From assembly GCA_965644495.1 (NCBI GenBank), contig CBFFSA010000008.1, positions 496,001-560,000 on the forward strand: DNA of 64,000 bases. The letters are read 5' to 3'. This DNA comes from Perkinsela sp. CCAP 1560/9 (taxonomy: Eukaryota > Protista > Euglenozoa: Kinetoplastea). Positions 15,461 to 55,559 of the stretch are shown in pieces. The notes below the pieces were generated by a model. That model did no database searches and was not told where the DNA came from. It was given only the letters and a program-made list of their open reading frames with translations. The position numbers and the translations under genes are program-made. How positions within the stretch are numbered: the first letter of the stretch is position 1; each line of letters opens with the position of its first letter.

Positions 15461-16630
15461 CTATTGACTAGAGCTCACTAATGCACGAAATCTCGAGAAA
15501 AGCAATCTCGACGTAGAAGTATTCGGGCACGATCTGTCGACAGATGCTCGCATTGCCGGACAGTATGTAATCGAGCTCAAATCCCCTAGCATTTGGCTGA
15601 TTGTAGATTCAGTCTTCGGCAAACTTGGCCGTTTTGTTCGTGCACAATATTTCCGCAGATAATTGGCAGGATAAACGTAATCCATGAACTTGTCAAGGGT
15701 CGAAGCGTATTTGTCGATGGAATCATTCTCAAAAAGCGCGTCCGAGGGTTGCAACTTGACCGTTGTCCAATTTTCATCGTGAAAACGAGAAAACTTAGAT
15801 AGCAGGGCTTCTTTCATGATGTGTTTGGCAGCAAGAGGAATATTTAACCGAGGATCTGTGTGTATCTTCTCAAAATTACATGCCTCGATAAGACCAGAGA
15901 GTGCTTTCCCATAACCTTCTGAGATGGAGTCAGGAATCCAAGTGTCGTCTCCGAGAAATAGAAACTTTCCAGACTCAAAAGCTTTTTTATACGTGCCGCT
16001 GAGGCCTCGTTCATAGGATGGGAGTGGGGCAGCCAAAAGGCACTTGTAGCTTAGGGTGAGATGCAGATGATCCTCACTCGTCATCACATGCTGTTCGTCG
16101 GGGTGACCCTTGAATTCTCCGAGCCCGATAGTAATGTGTACACAATGTCAAACGTAGGACATACATTTTTCCCCCATAGGAACTCTCTCCATGCTCAAAA
16201 TTGGGGATGATCTCGCCACAGACACAGGATATTTTTCCATCGTATCAAGATTATAAATTTAGATGTCGCCCAAAACGAACATACTGCTTAGTCTGGACCA
16301 CTTTGCACTAGGACTCTCGCATAAAGTATGTTCGAAGTAGGAAGCCAGCGCGCTCGTCACACAAGCGGTGGGGTACTTTGCGTAAAGAGTGTAAGAAAGC
16401 CGAAGGGTGCTAGGGCTCATAGGTGAATTGGTCCTCGTATCTTCGTTCTTCCGAGAGTCGCTCAAACAGATACCGTTTTCGTCAGATTTCCGAAAAGTAT
16501 AATCTTCTACAACTTGAGGAGGTTCTATTTCTACATTGGCATGTGCTGATAAAATTCCGAGCATGTGATTTATCACACAGATGTCGACAGATTTATTTAT
16601 ATTACTGTTCCCCCACCACTTATTTGTCAC
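15461..16630 (-). pseudogene. Probable single disrupted gene of unknown family (ORFs 16259-16630 and 15461-16087)
   Basis: Frame stays open after the TAA at 16259-16261 (IYNLDTMEKYPV...) and overlaps the open frame leading into 16087, consistent with one stop plus one frameshift. Confidence 0.45.
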
Positions 16631-16740
16631 CCCTTTTTCGAAAAAAGGACAAATAAGTAAGGGGGGTAGAGCTATGACAATTACGTGGGGGGATTACAGT
16701 TCGTGCATACTTCAAAAATATCTGCTTACGAATGTTCTTA

Positions 16741-16813
16741 GGTCAGCGTTAGTACCATCAGTAAGATAGCAGTGCCAGGGAAGACCACGAGGAAGTCCCG
16801 ACCTTACTTCCCC
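16741..16813 (-). ncRNA. HDV-like self-cleaving ribozyme, copy A (73 nt)
   Basis: GGGGAAG-UAA-GGUCGGG-ACU-UCCUCGU-GGU-CUUCCCU-GG-CAC-UGCUAUC-UUACU-GAUGGUA-CUAA-CGCUGACC gives P1 (7 bp, G-U first pair), P2, P3, L3, P1.1, P4 and a J4/2 catalytic C in HDV order. Confidence 0.88.
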
Positions 16814-16910
16814 ATTTTGGGTTGCGCCCAGAAGCAAGCCCACTTTAATTTTGCAATAGTCAAAACTTTGCGATAGAGAAAAAAGGTTATGGTATTAGTA
16901 TCATACATGA

Positions 16911-17021
16911 AGCGAGTACAGTACTCGTGTACTCACCCGAGTTGTATAGCGAGTAATTACTCGGAGTACCGTACTCGCCGTACTCGCTTCCAGCAGGTAT
17001 TTACTCGCTATACAAGTGAGT
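16911..17021. repeat. Foldback/palindromic repeat rich in GAGTA/TACTC
   Basis: TTGTATAGCGAGTAA ... TTACTCGCTATACAA inverted arms around GTACTCG repeats. Confidence 0.6.
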
Positions 17022-17201
17022 TTGGAACAAGTGACGTTATGTTACGAATTTTCTGGTCGAGCAATTGCTGGTCGAGGAGGATGTGAGATGTGATAAAGGA
17101 TGGAATGCGGGGTGTAAATGCGTTTGCAGTACAATCTTGTCGTCGCAATCTTGTTACTAATTACAGTAAAGTATTGTTGACTAATTTGACTCAGACGAGA
17201 T

Positions 17202-17314
17202 GTAGTGCCTCCTTATTCATTTCCGAAGTAGTGTAACAAGAAACTAAATAGAAATTAAAGCATACGGTAAAAAAATACGTAGTGCCTTCTTATTCATTTC
17301 CGAAACGGTGTAAC
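17202..17314. repeat. Two-copy ~36-bp direct repeat, period 77
   Basis: GTAGTGCCTYCTTATTCATTTCCGAAnnnGTGTAAC at 17202 and 17279. Confidence 0.8.
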
Positions 17315-17316
17315 TA

Positions 17317-17450
17317 AACCGGGGGACGGAATAATATTAAGTTGTTGAAACTTAATAATAACTTGACAACTTAATAGCCTGTCAAACTTAATAATAACTT
17401 GTCAACGTTTTGAAACTTAATATTAACTCGTCGGCGGGTTATTATTAGGT
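17317..17450 (-). mobile_element. Solo right end of the pogo-like element found at 53307-55559
   Basis: TA-AACCGGGGGACGGAATAATATTAAGTTGTTGAAAC... matches the reverse complement of 55441-55559. Confidence 0.88.
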
Positions 17451-17691
17451 TTTTGATGACTTTTAAGGTGACGTTTATCATTGGAGGGTGTGTAGGCCGT
17501 AGCTGGAGGTTGCTAGCAGTCGCTTGCAGTAACTGGTAATCAATGAGAGCCTCTGGTTGCCACTGGAGGTCAGAATGACTAGAAAACGACTAGAAGTCGC
17601 ACTGGAAAGTCGCTTCTTTCACTCTACCGTCCCTAGCATCGCATTAGCAAAATTACTTATGCATTAACGGTTAAGCATTTTGCTTCATAGC

Positions 17692-48329: not shown

Positions 48330-48706
48330 AAAACACTTTTAGACACTTTGATGACTGTTCCAACGACCTCGCGAAAGACTTCGCCTCTGCGTTGTGTAAC
48401 ATCAAAAGCGCCTCTCTGTCCCGTTTCGCCGCATCCGTGCTCACCCAAACCCCACTCCCCACTTGCTCTTCTCTCCGCCGATGGGGTATCTCTACCCATA
48501 TTAGCGACACATGTCCAATCTACGGCGAAGCGACCCAGACCCAGCGGCACATGCTCACGGGTTGCAAGGTGTCTCTGGAGCAAGGTCGATACACTTACCG
48601 ACACAGTCTTATCATGGCTTTAGCGGACGTCGTATCTAACTCCCCTATGACAGCCTCCTCTCACTTCGACGTATCACTGTACCTCAACCCACCCGCATGG
48701 AACTGA
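48330..48706 (+). mobile_element. C-terminal remnant of an RLE-type non-LTR retrotransposon (HERO/NeSL/R4-like)
   Basis: LPTCSSLRRWG...CPIYG...QTQRHMLTGC...LEQGRYTYRH matches the CCHC knuckle plus RH motif preceding RLE endonucleases. Confidence 0.75.
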
Positions 48707-50040
48707 ACTTCTCGCATCTCGCTCAGTTTCACCGAGGTTTCGAGAGGTTTCACAAAGGGTTTTATTGAGGTTCCGAGGTTTCATCGAGGAAATTTCACCG
48801 AGGAATTTTTTCCGGTCTACCTAATTTTTGCCATATTCTGCGGTACTCTGCCTATCACCACCGACCGGCCGCCCCCCCTCTAATTTCCGAAATATAAAGG
48901 TCTCTACAAATTTTAGCCGCCCAGATGGAATTTGACACCCATGTACGCGTCAAAAACTATTGTGAGCACTTTTTCCACGCGTGGGGCGAAGATATTATAA
49001 GGTACTGCCCCCCCCACTTAAACGCAACCAGGTTTTGGCCTAAAAATGCGCATAAGTAGCCGGGTCAAAAAAGGGGATGAATTTTTTTTTCGACTCCTCT
49101 TCAACGAATACTTGAATGGTCTTGATGTGCTTTGACAGAAACTCGATTGAAGTGAACTGATCAGAACATCAGCAACTCCTCCAAGTTTAGGAGTTACTAC
49201 CCCGCGTTTGACTCTAGCGTTAGTCATGGCATTCAGGAGTTTCGGTCCCCATTCTGAAAATACTTGATGTTTTCCCAAGTAATCGTTATCCTCAAGTCTG
49301 CTAAGGATTGACTTCATCTCATTGACTTTCTGAGGTATGACGTTCGCTAGGGTAGAAATACTTTCATACAGCTTTTCGGATAGTTTCACTTTCCACATGG
49401 TCGGAGAATTCACACCAAGACCTAAATACGACTGCTTGAGTGCTTCAGCTGTATTTACACTGCTGTCAAACCGTACTAACGGCGGCCGGACAGGACCGAT
49501 GCCTCTGGACAGATAAAATGCCTTTGGACAAATAAACTGCCTTTGGACAGAAAAATTGCCTCCCATTCATAAACCTTCCCCCGCCATACTCATCAGTGGT
49601 GGAGCTCCTCCGGGACGGGTAAGTGGGTCACACAGCTTCCAACTTCGCTGTAAGCTCACCCGTGCTGTTTGTCCGCGTTGCACAATAGTACAGAAGTGGT
49701 ACACAGGTTCTCAGTGGGCGACCCGCGCGCTGGAGTAATTTGGGGGTATAATTCTGTCACAGGGCTACGCTCACAATTGGGCCTTGCTCGCAAACGGGGG
49801 CTTTTGCCTCTAAAAGTGGGATTCGCTTACGGTTGGGCCTTGCCTCTGGACAATCCTGCGGAAACGGTGGACATGGCACCAGCACATTTATAATGCATAT
49901 AACAATAGTGTATTTCGTGGACACCTCAACATAATTTTTTTTGCAGCATTCACCGGTTTATGTCGCAGACGAGTAAACAAGGTCTGGGTTTATTGGCCCG
50001 GCCGGCCCTTCCGTGCGTTCGGCCTCTCATTTCCCCCAAA

Positions 50041-50120
50041 ACAACTGCCACCTTCCCCCCCTATTTATCAGGGGTCGCTCACGCGACCCCCGCTAAATAG
50101 GGGGGGAAGGTGGTAGTTGT
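50041..50120. repeat. 38-bp-arm hairpin with 4-nt loop
   Basis: 35 Watson-Crick pairs, 1 G-T and 2 mismatches around TCAC; looser pairing extends to about 49993-50165. Confidence 0.9.
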
Positions 50121-50369
50121 GGGGTATGGAGGCCTCTCGCAACTCCGGGGCCTCACCGGGAGCAAAGGTGAAATTCATTTGCGTCCCTGACTAAATGCAT
50201 TTTTCGGTTACGTCGCCTGTTGGAAGGTATTTTGTGCAATATGCTAGCAAACGGGGGCTTTCGCCTCCAGAAGTGGGCTACGCTCACAATTGGACCTAGA
50301 TGTATTTATGTAAATATAGCCCTATGAAAGATTTTATCTAATTATAATGTAAATTTCCGACATCCCTAT

Positions 50370-50442
50370 GGGGTAACATGGTTGGGACCTCTTCGTGGTC
50401 TTCCCCGGCACTGCTATCTTTCAGATGGTACTGACGCCGACC
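50370..50442 (+). ncRNA. HDV-like ribozyme, copy B (degenerate P1)
   Basis: GGGGUAA-CAU-GGUUGGG-ACC-UCUUCGU-GGU-CUUCCCC-GG-CAC-UGCUAUC-UUUCA-GAUGGUA-CUGA-CGCCGACC; 61/73 identical to copy A with no indels. Confidence 0.8.
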
Positions 50443-51739
50443 TTTTTTATTAGTGGCATTTTATCTGTCCATAGGCGTTTTATTTGTCCAGGGGCATTTG
50501 ACGTGTAAAGTGGCCCGTACTAACAATTGAGATAGGGCGATGCCTCTATACTTTCCCTTCGTAGCGCTTGCTCTGCCCCCTGAAAAAAATGCCCGTGAAA
50601 AACATTTCTTGAATTTAAAAGCCGAGGATGATTCATAGGGGTCGAATGCCGTCTTGCATACGTTGTTTAGCATATGGCCAATACAGGACAAGAGAGAAAC
50701 ACGATACTTTCGATTTACGTCACGCTCTAAATTAGCTAAATCCTCTTCGCCTACCGGGTCGATCCGATCGTAGACAGTCTTCAAGAATCCTTCACAATTT
50801 AAACGCGCAACATGACTGACAGTAGAGCCATCTACCATCAAGAACTTCAGTTTTAAGAGTCTCTCTTCCCCCAAAATTACTAGAGAGACAACTCAAAAGT
50901 TCTTTAGCCATCATGTATCCATCATATGCTTTATGGCTTGTAGAATACGAAGGAGGTAAAACGAATTCATGACACTCCACGTACAAAACAGCGATCATTA
51001 TATGCTCCGATTTAACGCGATCGATTCCCGTGTCGACTGCAAGTCCAAAGTACATAAAATGGTTAATTTCTTTGTGTAGGAGTTGCCACAATTCTTCAGC
51101 AAGGCTCGCGTTGCGAAGGTGGAGATCGTTCAATATTTTTGGCCCTTCTTGTAGCAGTATACTGGAAGGTGCTGAGGGTCTCAACGCTTCCTACGTGCGG
51201 ATGAACCATAGAAATCCGCTGCCAGGGAGATTCGTCATCGAATGGAGAGAAGGCAGTACCTTGTTTGAAAAATGTTGAACAGCTTCGCTATCCACGCGTG
51301 TATTAGTTGGCATGTCTTGAGAAAGAGTTGCTCGCTCCACGCAAACGCGTCGATGCTCAAGATAGTGGTTACGATATTTCCCGTGCGATGACCATTTGCA
51401 TCGCTTACATTCGTAATGCTGGTTATAAAGATACAGTTTCTGTACCTTGTTGGTACATTTTGCTAGCCCTTCCTTTCTTTTCCCGGAAACGGGCATACAT
51501 TTTCCTTTTAAATGCCCGTTTCCGGCTGACGGCTAGCAGGGACTGTCCCTCTTTTTCGTGGAAGTAGGGGAAGTACTTCCGACTTTTCAACCCTCCCCGG
51601 CTCACTCCTTGAGTGAGTTTTCTTCCCTCCCCGGCTTTCTTCTTCTCGCGCCTGTCTCTTCTCGGGAGCTATGCGCCATGGTGGCCTCCCTTGAGGACCA
51701 CCGGGCGTGACTCTGCCTTGCATTATCGCGAGGCAGCGT

Positions 51740-52427: not shown

Positions 52428-53110
52428 TCAAATCAACAAACCTTGAATCACATCCCAATCTTCACTCTCTTCTTCAGAGTCATCTTCTGTCTCTTCATTG
52501 TCGTTGTCTTCGTCCCTTTCTACTTCTTCCCTTTCCACTTCATCTTTTACGGACTTCAGAGCCAACAAAAGAGCGCAGAAGCGTTCTTGCCAGCTTGCAT
52601 TCTTAAAAAACAGCGTGTGCAATGAAACAACTTCATCAGCCTTATGCGGATGCATTGAGAGTCTTCCTTGCTTTCGTATTCCCCTCTTTACAGAAGAGTG
52701 GCACGACTCGGCATTGTTCGTATGTATTCCCTCCTTTGTAACAAAACGATATTTACCTTTTGTGCTATGGTTCACGACTCGATGATCTCTTACGGCATTT
52801 AATCCACGGTACGCCCGCCAAGCATCTGTGTTTACGATCGTGCGGTAGCTGTCCACTGCGTGCTTTTTCACAAAATTTTGTAAAGTAGTCCTGTCCCTTT
52901 TTTCAACGCGCTTCCATATAGTACGGCCACAACTACCATCTCTTTCGATCCCAGTAATTGTAGCCATGTAAAAAGATCTGTTTCTCACTCGGCATCCCCG
53001 ATGATACTTCCGTGGAAAGAGATAGGTTTCATCAACTGCGCACCTAGAGAACTTGATTTCCTCGTTGCGTTTCAGTACGGCTTTATGAATAAGAACATGT
53101 AGAATGAGGA
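52428..53110 (-). mobile_element. Merlin/IS1595-family (ISXO2-like) DDE transposase, 5'-truncated
   Basis: In-frame upstream AVDETYLFPRKYHRG, then GIER, TDAWRAY, HRVVNHS, HTNNAES. Confidence 0.88.
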
Positions 53111-53306: not shown

Positions 53307-55559
53307 AACCGGGGGACGGAATAATATTAAGATGCGGTTTATTATTAAGTTGCGGTTTATTATTAAGTTAGACAAGTTATTATTAAGCTAGACAGGTTAT
53401 TATTAAGCTGGACAAGTTATTATTAAGTTGTCAAGTTATTATTAAGTTTGTGTTTTTCGATGGGAGAAGGAGATTTTTTCGCCGAAAGTTTGACCCTTCA
53501 TAGATTGGCTCAGGCAGAGTGTGACCCAACCTACGTTCAGGAAAACGATGAGATTATGTCCCTTGAGGATGATGAAGGGGTAGAAATGCTTGATGACTCG
53601 TCGGACGTAATTGGTAGCGGAAGCGATGGAGAAAGTGAAAGTGCTAGCGAGAGCGAAAGTGAAAGCAATTGTGAAAGCGAATGTGAAAGTGTGAATTCAA
53701 GCGAAGAAGAAATAGGATATAATGTTGAAAGTGCGAGCGAAAGTAAAATTAAGAGTAATTCAACTTCGGATGATGAAGATAACGGAGCGGAGCTGACTGT
53801 TGGAGGGAAAGACAAGAACGAGCGCAAAAAACAACATTGCGTAGTATATACGGGGCGTCATATAGACCAGGGTGTGCGCGGTCGAGTGGAACCCACGGCT
53901 AGACAAAAGCGTGTAATATATGAGAAGTGGATTTCCTGGTCGCAACAAGATCGAGATGCTTATGGATCACTCCGCAAGTTAAACTCTTGGATCGACAAGC
54001 GATTCCCTAAGAAACGTGTCCACATTTTTAACAAAAAGCAAGTTATGGCATACTCTAAAATTCCTAGGCATAGTCAAAAGCGTAAAAGGCATGTAAAGGG
54101 GCATAAACTGAAATGGTTAAAACAACAATTGCATTATTTTATTCTTGGAGCTCGAGAGAACGATGCTTTGATAACAACCGAGATGGTGCGCCAAGAGGCA
54201 TTTCGCATGCTGAAAAAGGAAAACCGCAAATCACCAGAGCAGAACAAAGCACGGGGAATTACAAGAGTAAGCGAACGTTGGATAGGGAGATTCCTCCACT
54301 CTTACAAATGGTCTATAAGATTAGTAAAGAGATCAACTCAGCTATCAAGTGAAGAGATAAATAAAAGAATTCATTCCTTTCATACGTTTGCCTATCGTTG
54401 TCTTAAAACAAAAAAGTTTCGTTCCGTTCTGAATTTTGATGAAATTCCCATATCATTTCGCGGGTCCATGAAATCTTTAAAAACAATTGCGCAGCGAGGA
54501 GAAGAAGATGTACGAGGGCGTTGCAATCCGAATGATATGAAGCGATGCGCAACGCTTATCTGCGGTGCTGGCGTGAAACTGGATAAAAATGGAAGTCCAA
54601 CGAGTCATTTCTTTCTAAAACCTTTTATCGTGTGGAAAGGAGCTGGAAAAGGATCTAGTCACGAGATATTTGATGCAAGGACGGCTCGAGCTTTTACTCC
54701 GAAAGGTGTCGTGAACAAAGATTTTTTTCTCCAAGACTTTATTCCCTTTCTCAAACGTGAACTGGATATAAATGACGCAGGCCACACTTTAATTTATCTA
54801 GACTCCTGCCGATCTCACATAACAAGTGACGTTCTCGATGCGTTTGCCACTGTGGCTAACTGCTATTGTGCCATATTACCCCCTGCAACAACATCCTGGA
54901 TCCAATGGATTGATGTATTTTATGCTTCTTCGTACAAACGCGAGCAAGTAAACATTTGGCACAGAGAACAACATATCCGTCGGACCGCCCGCCAAAAAAG
55001 ACAATGGATGCATAATGCCGTTGCCCGAGCGCACGAACAAGTTATAAATCTCGACAACGACTCTCTTGATGAATCAGGGACCCTTTCCTCTTCTATGAAC
55101 GTTGTTCAACAATTCAAAAGCTTGGGGTATATCGACCCTTGTGATGCATCGTGGTCGCATGTGAAATGTTTAGAAGGATATGTCTTTGTTACACCAAGCG
55201 ATGACGATGAGAGAGACGAAGCTAAGAGAATCGAAGATGCCTTTTGAGCGTGGGAAAAGCGTCCAGGCACGAAAATCATTCCAAGGACGGCTCGATAAAT
55301 GGTGTAACCCACGACGCTCCACCGAATAAAGGTAAAGAAAAGAAAGATTTATGAAGTTTATGAAGTCGGGTAAAGATTCAGATAAAAAAAATATTGTTAA
55401 AGATTGTATACATAAAAAAACAATTTGTTAATTTTATTACAAACTTAATAATAACCCGCCGACAAGTTAATATTAAGTTTCAAAACGTTGACAGGTTATT
55501 ATTAAGTTGTCAAGTTATTATTAAGTTTCAACAACTTAATATTATTACGTCCCCCGGTT
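53307..55559 (+). mobile_element. pogo-like DNA transposon, apparently complete (2253 bp)
   Basis: TA flanks; 25-bp TIR AACCGGGGGACG(G/T)AATAATATTAAG; subterminal TTATTATTAAG arrays; single long ORF. Confidence 0.92.
53460..55247 (+). CDS. pogo/CENP-B-type DDE_1 transposase (DD36D)
   Basis: CENPB-type HTH (ITTEMVRQEA...SERWIGRFL), LNFDE, YLDSCRSH, LPPATTSWIQWID; ATG at 53460. Confidence 0.9.
   Translation: MGEGDFFAESLTLHRLAQAECDPTYVQENDEIMSLEDDEGVEMLDDSSDVIGSGSDGESESASESESESNCESECESVNSSEEEIGYNVESASESKIKSNSTSDDEDNGAELTVGGKDKNERKKQHCVVYTGRHIDQGVRGRVEPTARQKRVIYEKWISWSQQDRDAYGSLRKLNSWIDKRFPKKRVHIFNKKQVMAYSKIPRHSQKRKRHVKGHKLKWLKQQLHYFILGARENDALITTEMVRQEAFRMLKKENRKSPEQNKARGITRVSERWIGRFLHSYKWSIRLVKRSTQLSSEEINKRIHSFHTFAYRCLKTKKFRSVLNFDEIPISFRGSMKSLKTIAQRGEEDVRGRCNPNDMKRCATLICGAGVKLDKNGSPTSHFFLKPFIVWKGAGKGSSHEIFDARTARAFTPKGVVNKDFFLQDFIPFLKRELDINDAGHTLIYLDSCRSHITSDVLDAFATVANCYCAILPPATTSWIQWIDVFYASSYKREQVNIWHREQHIRRTARQKRQWMHNAVARAHEQVINLDNDSLDESGTLSSSMNVVQQFKSLGYIDPCDASWSHVKCLEGYVFVTPSDDDERDEAKRIEDAF

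Follow-up and report, generated by a model that had tools for sequence, protein, structure and literature searches.

Candidate HDV-like ribozymes near the right ends of cut-and-paste DNA transposons in Perkinsela sp. CCAP 1560/9

Results

Two copies of a ribozyme-like motif in the window

The window is a stretch of 64,000 nucleotides of the Perkinsela sp. CCAP 1560/9 genome (contig CBFFSA010000008.1, positions 496,001 to 560,000). All its genes between positions 191 and 46571 are encoded by the minus strand, and the genome as a whole has long one-strand gene arrays. Two copies of a motif that may fold into an HDV-like ribozyme, A and B, were found in the window (Table 1). The single other match of copy B within the window is copy A, on the opposite strand (positions 16740-16815, 84% identity over 76 nt, E 7e-19, BLAST). 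Neither copy is solitary, as both lie inside inverted-repeat elements, and in this respect the sequence-only reading, which had described a ribozyme-only dispersed repeat of the retrozyme or SIDER kind, is not supported.

Table 1. Candidate ribozymes and the elements carrying them in the window
Feature	Positions	Strand	Remarks
Carrier of copy A, family F1, TA-flanked pogo-related inverted-repeat element, right 668 bp (598-1265)	16603..17248	-	left end missing
Copy A, candidate HDV-like ribozyme	16741..16813	-	100 bits; 25/25 scored pairs intact; G1-U37 wobble, C62 present
9-bp target-site duplication, left, CGTACTAAC	49472..49480		perfect
Carrier of copy B, non-autonomous inverted-repeat element, family FB, 1,035 bp	49481..50515		inverted arms and 9-bp duplication
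Left inverted-repeat arm	49501..49560		reiterated subterminal motifs of about 19 nt; 60-nt arms, 78% complementary
Copy B, candidate HDV-like ribozyme	50370..50442	+	G1 = 50370; predicted catalytic C62 = 50431; 91.1 bits
Right inverted-repeat arm	50455..50514		starts 12 nt past the ribozyme
9-bp target-site duplication, right, CGTACTAAC	50516..50524		perfect

The alignment of the two copies (MAFFT) is gap-free over 73 nt, and beyond the fold the copies share only AT on the 5' side and a single T on the 3' side, in agreement with the earlier statement that the similarity ends about 2 nt past the fold. The copies differ at 12 ribozyme positions (5, 7, 8, 10, 14, 20, 23, 37, 52, 54, 64 and 69). 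Both the number of differences and the lack of indels, as first reported, are confirmed by BLAST and MAFFT, and the original classification of the differences is exact under the fold derived below. Four changes from A to B retain pairing (C-G to U-G at position 14, G-U to G-C at 69, U-G to C-G at 20, and G-U to G-C at 37), five occur in joiners or loops (8, 10, 52, 54 and 64), one weakens P1.1 (C-G to U-G at 23), and two break P1 (A-U to U/U at 5 and G-C to A/C at 7). The copies were also called colinear, which is true of the alignment alone, since they reside on opposite strands and thus are mutually inverted in the genome. The 73-nt core of neither copy is hugged by a target duplication or associated with poly(A) or a tandem or circle-like arrangement.

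Structure of the motif

The fold derived from the sequence consists of stems P1 (positions 1-7/31-37), P2 (10-16/68-74), P3 (18-20/28-30), P1.1 (22-23/38-39) and P4 (43-49/55-61). The loop L3 is U21-C22-C23-U24-C25-G26-U27 (UCCUCGU), and the joiner J4/2 starts with C62-U-A-A. Standard pairs occupy 92.2% of the 1,040 pair cells in an alignment of 40 distinct copies, compared to 28-52% in registers shifted by 1-3 columns on the 3' side. In the same alignment, changes on both sides are seen at five pairs, P1 2-36, P1 4-34, P1.1 22-39, P4 45-59 and P4 46-58, so that compensatory changes are present in P1, P1.1 and P4. The change at P1.1 22-39 is the replacement of C-G by U-A in family F6. The covariation score of the 40 distinct copies exceeds the scores of all 500 shuffles, which is a rank among shuffles and not a probability. 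The mean identity among copies is 90%, and thus the covariation is based on few events.

The positions characteristic of an HDV-like ribozyme are conserved as well. Of 52 copies, 49 have C62, A and B among them, and 46 have G1. P1 is closed by G1-U37 in 33 of the 40 distinct copies, and by G1-C37 in copy B and its near relatives. In L3, T21, T24 and G26 are conserved at 90% or more, and C25 is invariant; copy B has U23 in this loop, forming a U-G pair in P1.1.

A search of the whole window against Rfam at the gathering score produced no ribozyme match, nor did searches of 11-kb and 1.5-kb stretches at E<=10. The best of 4,227 Rfam families on 106 nt around copy A is RF00094 HDV_ribozyme (16.5 bits, E 1.5, cut-off 50). 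The alignment to RF00094 puts P1, P3/L3 and the GG of P1.1 where the derived fold has them. Rfam models are unable to score pseudoknots, and this is therefore a weak test of the HDV type. From the pairing pattern and the conserved positions we accept the fold as a genuine HDV-type double-pseudoknot design, predicted to be self-cleaving.

Copies in the genome

A search with copy A as the query identified at least 40 copies in the 21-Mb genome to which the window belongs. A covariance model derived from 25 distinct copies has at least 105 matches at E<=0.01 in this genome, copy B among them, and the resemblance of A and B is thus not a chance one. Copy A scores 100 bits with this model, and copy B 91 bits. 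The number is a lower bound, as 150 of 5,299 candidates were scored. The flanks were analyzed for a sample of 52 of the at least 105 copies, comprising 30 loci with 1.5 kb on each side, 20 loci with 2 kb on each side, locus L053 and copy B.

The 52 copies form seven flank clusters, two of which contain two related families each. All but one copy (51 of 52) belong to flank families with 2-18 members, the singleton being L070. Between the clusters, homology is confined to approximately -2 to +74 relative to G1. Within each family, the downstream (right-end) extent is short and fixed, whereas the upstream (left) extent is variable, the reverse of the pattern expected for a ribozyme at the 5' end of a retroelement. 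With the exception of F5, inverted repeats form the boundaries of the families, and the TA or 9-bp duplications are located at the ends of these carriers and not at the ribozyme edges. In at least six independent families, the ribozyme is oriented outward at a distance of 73-300 nt from the right end. The possibility that the copies are modules at the 5' ends of short retroposons was considered first and dropped, given the fixed right and variable left ends, the inverted ends, and the TA or 9-bp duplications.

Members of a family are hardly more similar to each other in the core than in the flanks. Thus selection can be argued for only between families, whereas individual copies drift. Of the two P1.1 pairs, the abundant families F4 and F7 have just one, and hence ribozyme activity is clearly not required for the spread of these derivatives.

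The carrier of copy B

The end of ribozyme B is 73 nt from the right terminus of its carrier, and the ribozyme is oriented outward. In silico excision of the carrier together with one duplicate produces a continuous 276-aa ORF on the minus strand across the junction. The carrier is thus a true insertion, placed in an older ORF with a 9-bp target duplication. The interrupted ORF is located in the region 48700-51700 of the window, on the minus strand; no Pfam domain was found in its pieces. An empty site was not seen in the contigs of the DNA runs, which were uninformative.

Two relatives of this carrier, L035 and L046, have the same termini and 9-bp duplications with one mismatch each. At their right ends the ribozyme is reduced to its 3' part, after which come the same TTTTTTATTAG and the subterminal repeats. 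Such remnants at the same right end indicate that the ribozyme is ancestral in the right end of FB and has been eroded by internal deletions. The sister copy L057 on contig 1 shares its flanks with copy B from -116 to +129 (91% identity). Further FB-type ends adjoin model matches on contigs 77 and 4, and the left end of the carrier has twelve further matching places in the genome. No transposase-encoding partner with FB ends was found among the inspected copies. The 9-bp duplication would fit Mutator-like or Merlin-like elements.

The FB carrier is composite. Nested in it is a very abundant repeat of approximately 180-226 bp, which includes a palindrome with 38-nt arms. In the window this repeat occupies positions 49953-50175, with the palindrome arms at 50041-50078 and 50083-50120. 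It has more than 100 matches in the genome, some of them in tandem (contig 11, 157.8-158.6 kb). Matches to microRNA-like Rfam families at 50033-50142 (mir-4433, 45 bits) are spurious; they reflect the palindrome, and there is no RNA gene.

Decay of copy B

Copy B had been suspected to be crippled, and comparison with its sister shows that it is indeed damaged. The ribozyme of L057 is intact and has G5 and G7. Copy B differs from it at position 42 and at the P1 positions T5 and A7, where two pairs are lost. T5 (50374) is unique to copy B among the 52 copies, whereas A7 (50376) occurs in two other copies only. As the sister keeps both guanines, the two breaks are private decay of copy B. Its P1 contains five of the seven pairs, compared to all seven in most copies. 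On the other hand, P2, P3, P1.1, P4 and C62 are intact, and four contiguous G-C pairs are left beside the cleavage site. The G1-C37 pair and G64 are not damage, but traits of the family formed by copy B and its close relatives. Judging from the pairing, the two mismatches probably slow or abolish cleavage of copy B. Copy B is a mildly decayed relic in a non-coding carrier, and the interest is in the family rather than in this copy. Apparent variants with G5 and G7 in DNA run X2 were rejected, being cross-mapped reads of the sister copy.

The carrier of copy A and other families

The end of ribozyme A is approximately 138 nt from the right terminus of F1. A full copy of this family, L007, is 1,265 bp long, flanked by TA, and has the inverted ends TACTGTGCCCCCCACTTATTTGTC (left) and GACAAATAAGTGG..GGGCACAGTA (right). 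L002, L003 and L008 are internal-deletion derivatives with upstream parts joined at -21, -84 or -298. The carriers of A and B thus are members of unrelated transposon families, TA-flanked pogo-like in one case and generating a 9-bp duplication in the other, and for this reason the ribozyme is the only part that the two loci have in common.

Several carriers encode candidate transposases. ORFs with the pogo-type DDE_1 domain were found upstream of the ribozyme and on the same strand in L012 of family F2 (E 2e-14) and in L070 (E 6e-10). The ORFs of F3, which end 58 nt before the ribozyme, are 31-34% identical to the L070 ORF on the amino-acid level. Family F3 is flanked by TA and has inverted ends, and the right ends of F2, F3 and L070 are alike (...GGGGGG(A/C)CAGTA). 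Hence in three pogo-like lineages the ribozyme follows the transposase ORF on the same strand. The ribozyme cores are 80-88% identical across lineages whose transposases are approximately 30% identical, and this difference, together with the compensatory changes, suggests that the fold is under selection in the source elements.

Other families have different ends. F4 and F7 are also flanked by TA, with other inverted ends, TA|CTCCCTCTCTCATTAA... and TA|CAGTGCACAC.... Family F6 has inverted ends AGGGGTCCCTAAA... and 9-bp duplications. In its members L059-L061, the ribozyme and a 21-nt leader are tandemly duplicated (-21 to +140 from G1). The first ribozyme copy there has T at +1 and the compensated U22-A39 pair in P1.1, and the second copy is internally deleted. 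The 21-nt direct repeats at the F6 ribozyme were considered as a possible target duplication of the core and rejected, since they are a product of this tandem duplication.

Family F5 is formed by two neighboring copies, L021 and L030 (contig 20, 148.7 and 150.3 kb), whose cores are the closest to the family of copy B. In both, G1 follows poly(A) immediately, and the ribozyme is followed by a G/A-rich sequence resembling a LINE tail. Among the inspected copies, only these two look retro-copied. They look like reverse-transcribed products of self-cleaved transposon RNA, which would be a hint, from the arrangement of the sequences, that cleavage occurs in vivo.

Discussion

Comparison with known ribozymes

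HDV-type self-cleaving ribozymes are known from a virus, from a few host genes, and from the 5' ends of retrotransposons, where they free the RNA of the element from host co-transcripts.

The Perkinsela motif shares with the HDV-like ribozymes (HDV, CPEB3, drz-Agam, R2; RF00094) the nested double pseudoknot P1/P1.1/P2/P3/P4 of approximately 70 nt, the G1-U wobble closing P1 with the cut expected 5' of G1, the L3 sequence UCCUCGU whose CC pairs with the GG after P1, and the C followed by UAA in J4/2. On the other hand, its P4 is short (7 bp), and it reaches the threshold of no Rfam family. The location differs, too. Elsewhere, the home of HDV-like ribozymes is a virus genome, an intron or the 5' end of a retrotransposon, whereas here it is a subterminal position, behind the transposase ORF, in cut-and-paste DNA transposons.

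HDV-like ribozymes at retrotransposon 5' ends are represented by R2 (PMC3414825), and the Pr77/SIDER hallmark is characteristic of trypanosomatid retroposons (PMC8190864, PMC5509151). The situation in Perkinsela is similar to that of R2 and of the Pr77 of L1Tc/NARTc in that an HDV-type ribozyme borne by a mobile element would free the element RNA from a host co-transcript and, in the case of L1Tc/NARTc, in the kinetoplastid type of genome with polycistronic transcription (PMC3414825, PMC8190864). However, the ribozymes of R2 and L1Tc/NARTc define the 5' end of an element that is copied through RNA. The Perkinsela ribozyme is near the 3' (right) end, the sequence upstream of it belongs to the element, and inverted ends with TA or 9-bp duplications delimit the elements.

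Retrozymes and SIDERs are likewise small dispersed repeats with a self-cleaving or cleavage-prone RNA motif (SIDER2, PMC5509151; retrozymes, bioRxiv 10.64898/2026.07.22.740005). However, retrozymes contain hammerheads in tandem or LTR-like repeats and produce circular RNA, and Leishmania SIDERs are degenerate LINE derivatives that start with a 77-79-nt hallmark; neither arrangement is seen around copies A and B. The literature on HDV-like or self-cleaving ribozymes in connection with DNA transposons, transposases or terminal inverted repeats contained retrotransposon work only (R2, L1Tc/SIDER). In the literature searched we did not find a description of a subterminal DNA-transposon home for HDV-like ribozymes.

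Origin of the repeat

Copy B is probably a slightly decayed member of a family of at least 105 HDV-like motifs that form an integral part, close to one end, of cut-and-paste DNA transposons and of the elements derived from them by deletion. That homology ceases abruptly at the ribozyme edges is most likely due to selection for the fold in active source elements rather than to movement of the ribozyme by itself. For the ribozyme to be present in unrelated families, the module must have been transferred between elements in some way. The original claim that the fold is the conserved or mobile unit thus is retained in its first half, as the fold alone is common to A, B and at least seven flank families, and its second half, that the unit moves by itself, is not supported.

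A rather unlikely alternative is that the ribozyme, functional now or in the past, was picked up by chance, for instance from a retroelement, has no role, and is abundant because its carriers are. The similar conservation of core and flanks within families and the weakened P1.1 in the large families F4 and F7 agree with such passive transport, and so does the orientation relative to the neighboring host ORFs, which looks mixed. However, a mere passenger would hardly be found at the same position and in the same outward orientation in so many independent families, nor be retained behind such diverged transposase ORFs with the cores themselves so similar, nor would the pairs of P1, P1.1 and P4 be maintained between families by compensatory changes.

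It is very unlikely that the ribozyme, with its 73 nt, constitutes a minimal retro-mobilised element of the retrozyme or SIDER kind and lands alone. This would explain the homology edges at -2 and +74, and the F5 copies start at G1 after poly(A) and continue into LINE-tail-like sequence, as expected from reverse-transcribed self-cleaved RNA. However, all 52 inspected copies are in a larger context, 51 of them with flanks common to a family, and even the singleton L070 is downstream of a pogo-type transposase ORF and inside its own inverted-repeat end. The inverted ends and duplications mark the carriers rather than the ribozyme, the core is followed by neither poly(A) nor tandem circle-like units, and the partial ribozymes kept by FB relatives at the same site indicate descent together with the carrier.

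It is highly improbable that the motif acts in transposon ends as DNA, for instance as a binding site for a protein. The motif is always subterminal, and self-cleavage is a prediction from the sequence. However, it is common to families with unrelated ends and different lengths of the target duplication, its paired positions co-vary, the core features of HDV are matched, and HDV_ribozyme is the best of the Rfam families.

That the copies are truncated 5' ends of LINEs or SINEs, similar to the L1Tc/Pr77 ribozyme of trypanosomatids, is scarcely credible: HDV-like ribozymes do occur at the 5' ends of non-LTR retrotransposons, including those of kinetoplastids (PMC8190864, PMC3414825), and there are LINE ORFs near L059, L021 and L005, but the repeat of every family includes sequence upstream of the ribozyme and extends a short, fixed distance downstream of it, there is no reverse-transcriptase ORF after the ribozyme, and the LINE ORF near L059 is outside the inverted-repeat element that carries the ribozyme. 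The sequence-only reading was therefore right that this is not an ordinary autonomous LINE 5' UTR, the upstream ORFs on the same strand being DDE_1 transposases, and the 52 inspected copies are not consistently the 5' end of a full-length retrotransposon.

Possible function

If copy B and its relatives are a built-in module of DNA transposons, the following mechanism can be suggested, although we put it forward tentatively and with somewhat more doubt than confidence. Read-through is the probable mode of transcription of elements in a genome organised in one-strand arrays. The ribozyme of an autonomous element, which lies on the sense strand past the transposase stop codon and before the right inverted repeat, would cleave read-through or polycistronic transcripts immediately 5' of G1. 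The cut would provide the transposase RNA with a defined 3' end that does not depend on flanking signals, and would detach from it the right inverted repeat and the host RNA farther downstream. A further effect would be that no RNA molecule contains both inverted repeats. In the FB carrier, which is non-coding, the module is a relic.

More generally, HDV-like ribozymes may be a selected functional module of several unrelated cut-and-paste families (pogo-like, other TA-flanked and 9-bp-duplicating) in a protist with polycistronic transcription, exchanged between these families and cutting the RNA between the transposase ORF and the right repeat; we regard this as a serious possibility that falls a little short of being probable. 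If so, they would constitute a self-contained device for 3'-end formation or insulation, which may also prevent the inverted repeats from forming hairpin RNA. It would be the first case of a self-cleaving ribozyme with such a role in DNA transposons. It would suggest that DNA transposons without gene-specific host promoters and terminators also manage their transcripts by RNA self-cleavage, and would widen the known biology of small ribozymes.

Other elements and repeats

Two other mobile-element ORFs are located to the right of the FB carrier in the window, both belonging to elements without a ribozyme. One, at 52428-52988 on the minus strand, is a fragment with an ISXO2/IS1595-type DDE domain (E 4e-11). 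The other, at 53448-55247 on the plus strand, encodes 599 aa, has no Pfam match, and is unlike the ribozyme-linked pogo-like transposases. Upstream of the truncated F1 element, the region 17277-17470 (minus strand) contains a duplicated subrepeat of approximately 40 nt and AT-rich hairpin-forming repeats AGTTGTCAAGTTATTATTAAGTTT..., which may be the end of another element. Elsewhere in the genome, loci L051 and L052 (contig 13, 214-224 kb, and contig 2, 1327-1337 kb) are 98.4% identical throughout 10 kb, and thus represent a large segmental duplication that contains an F1 element.
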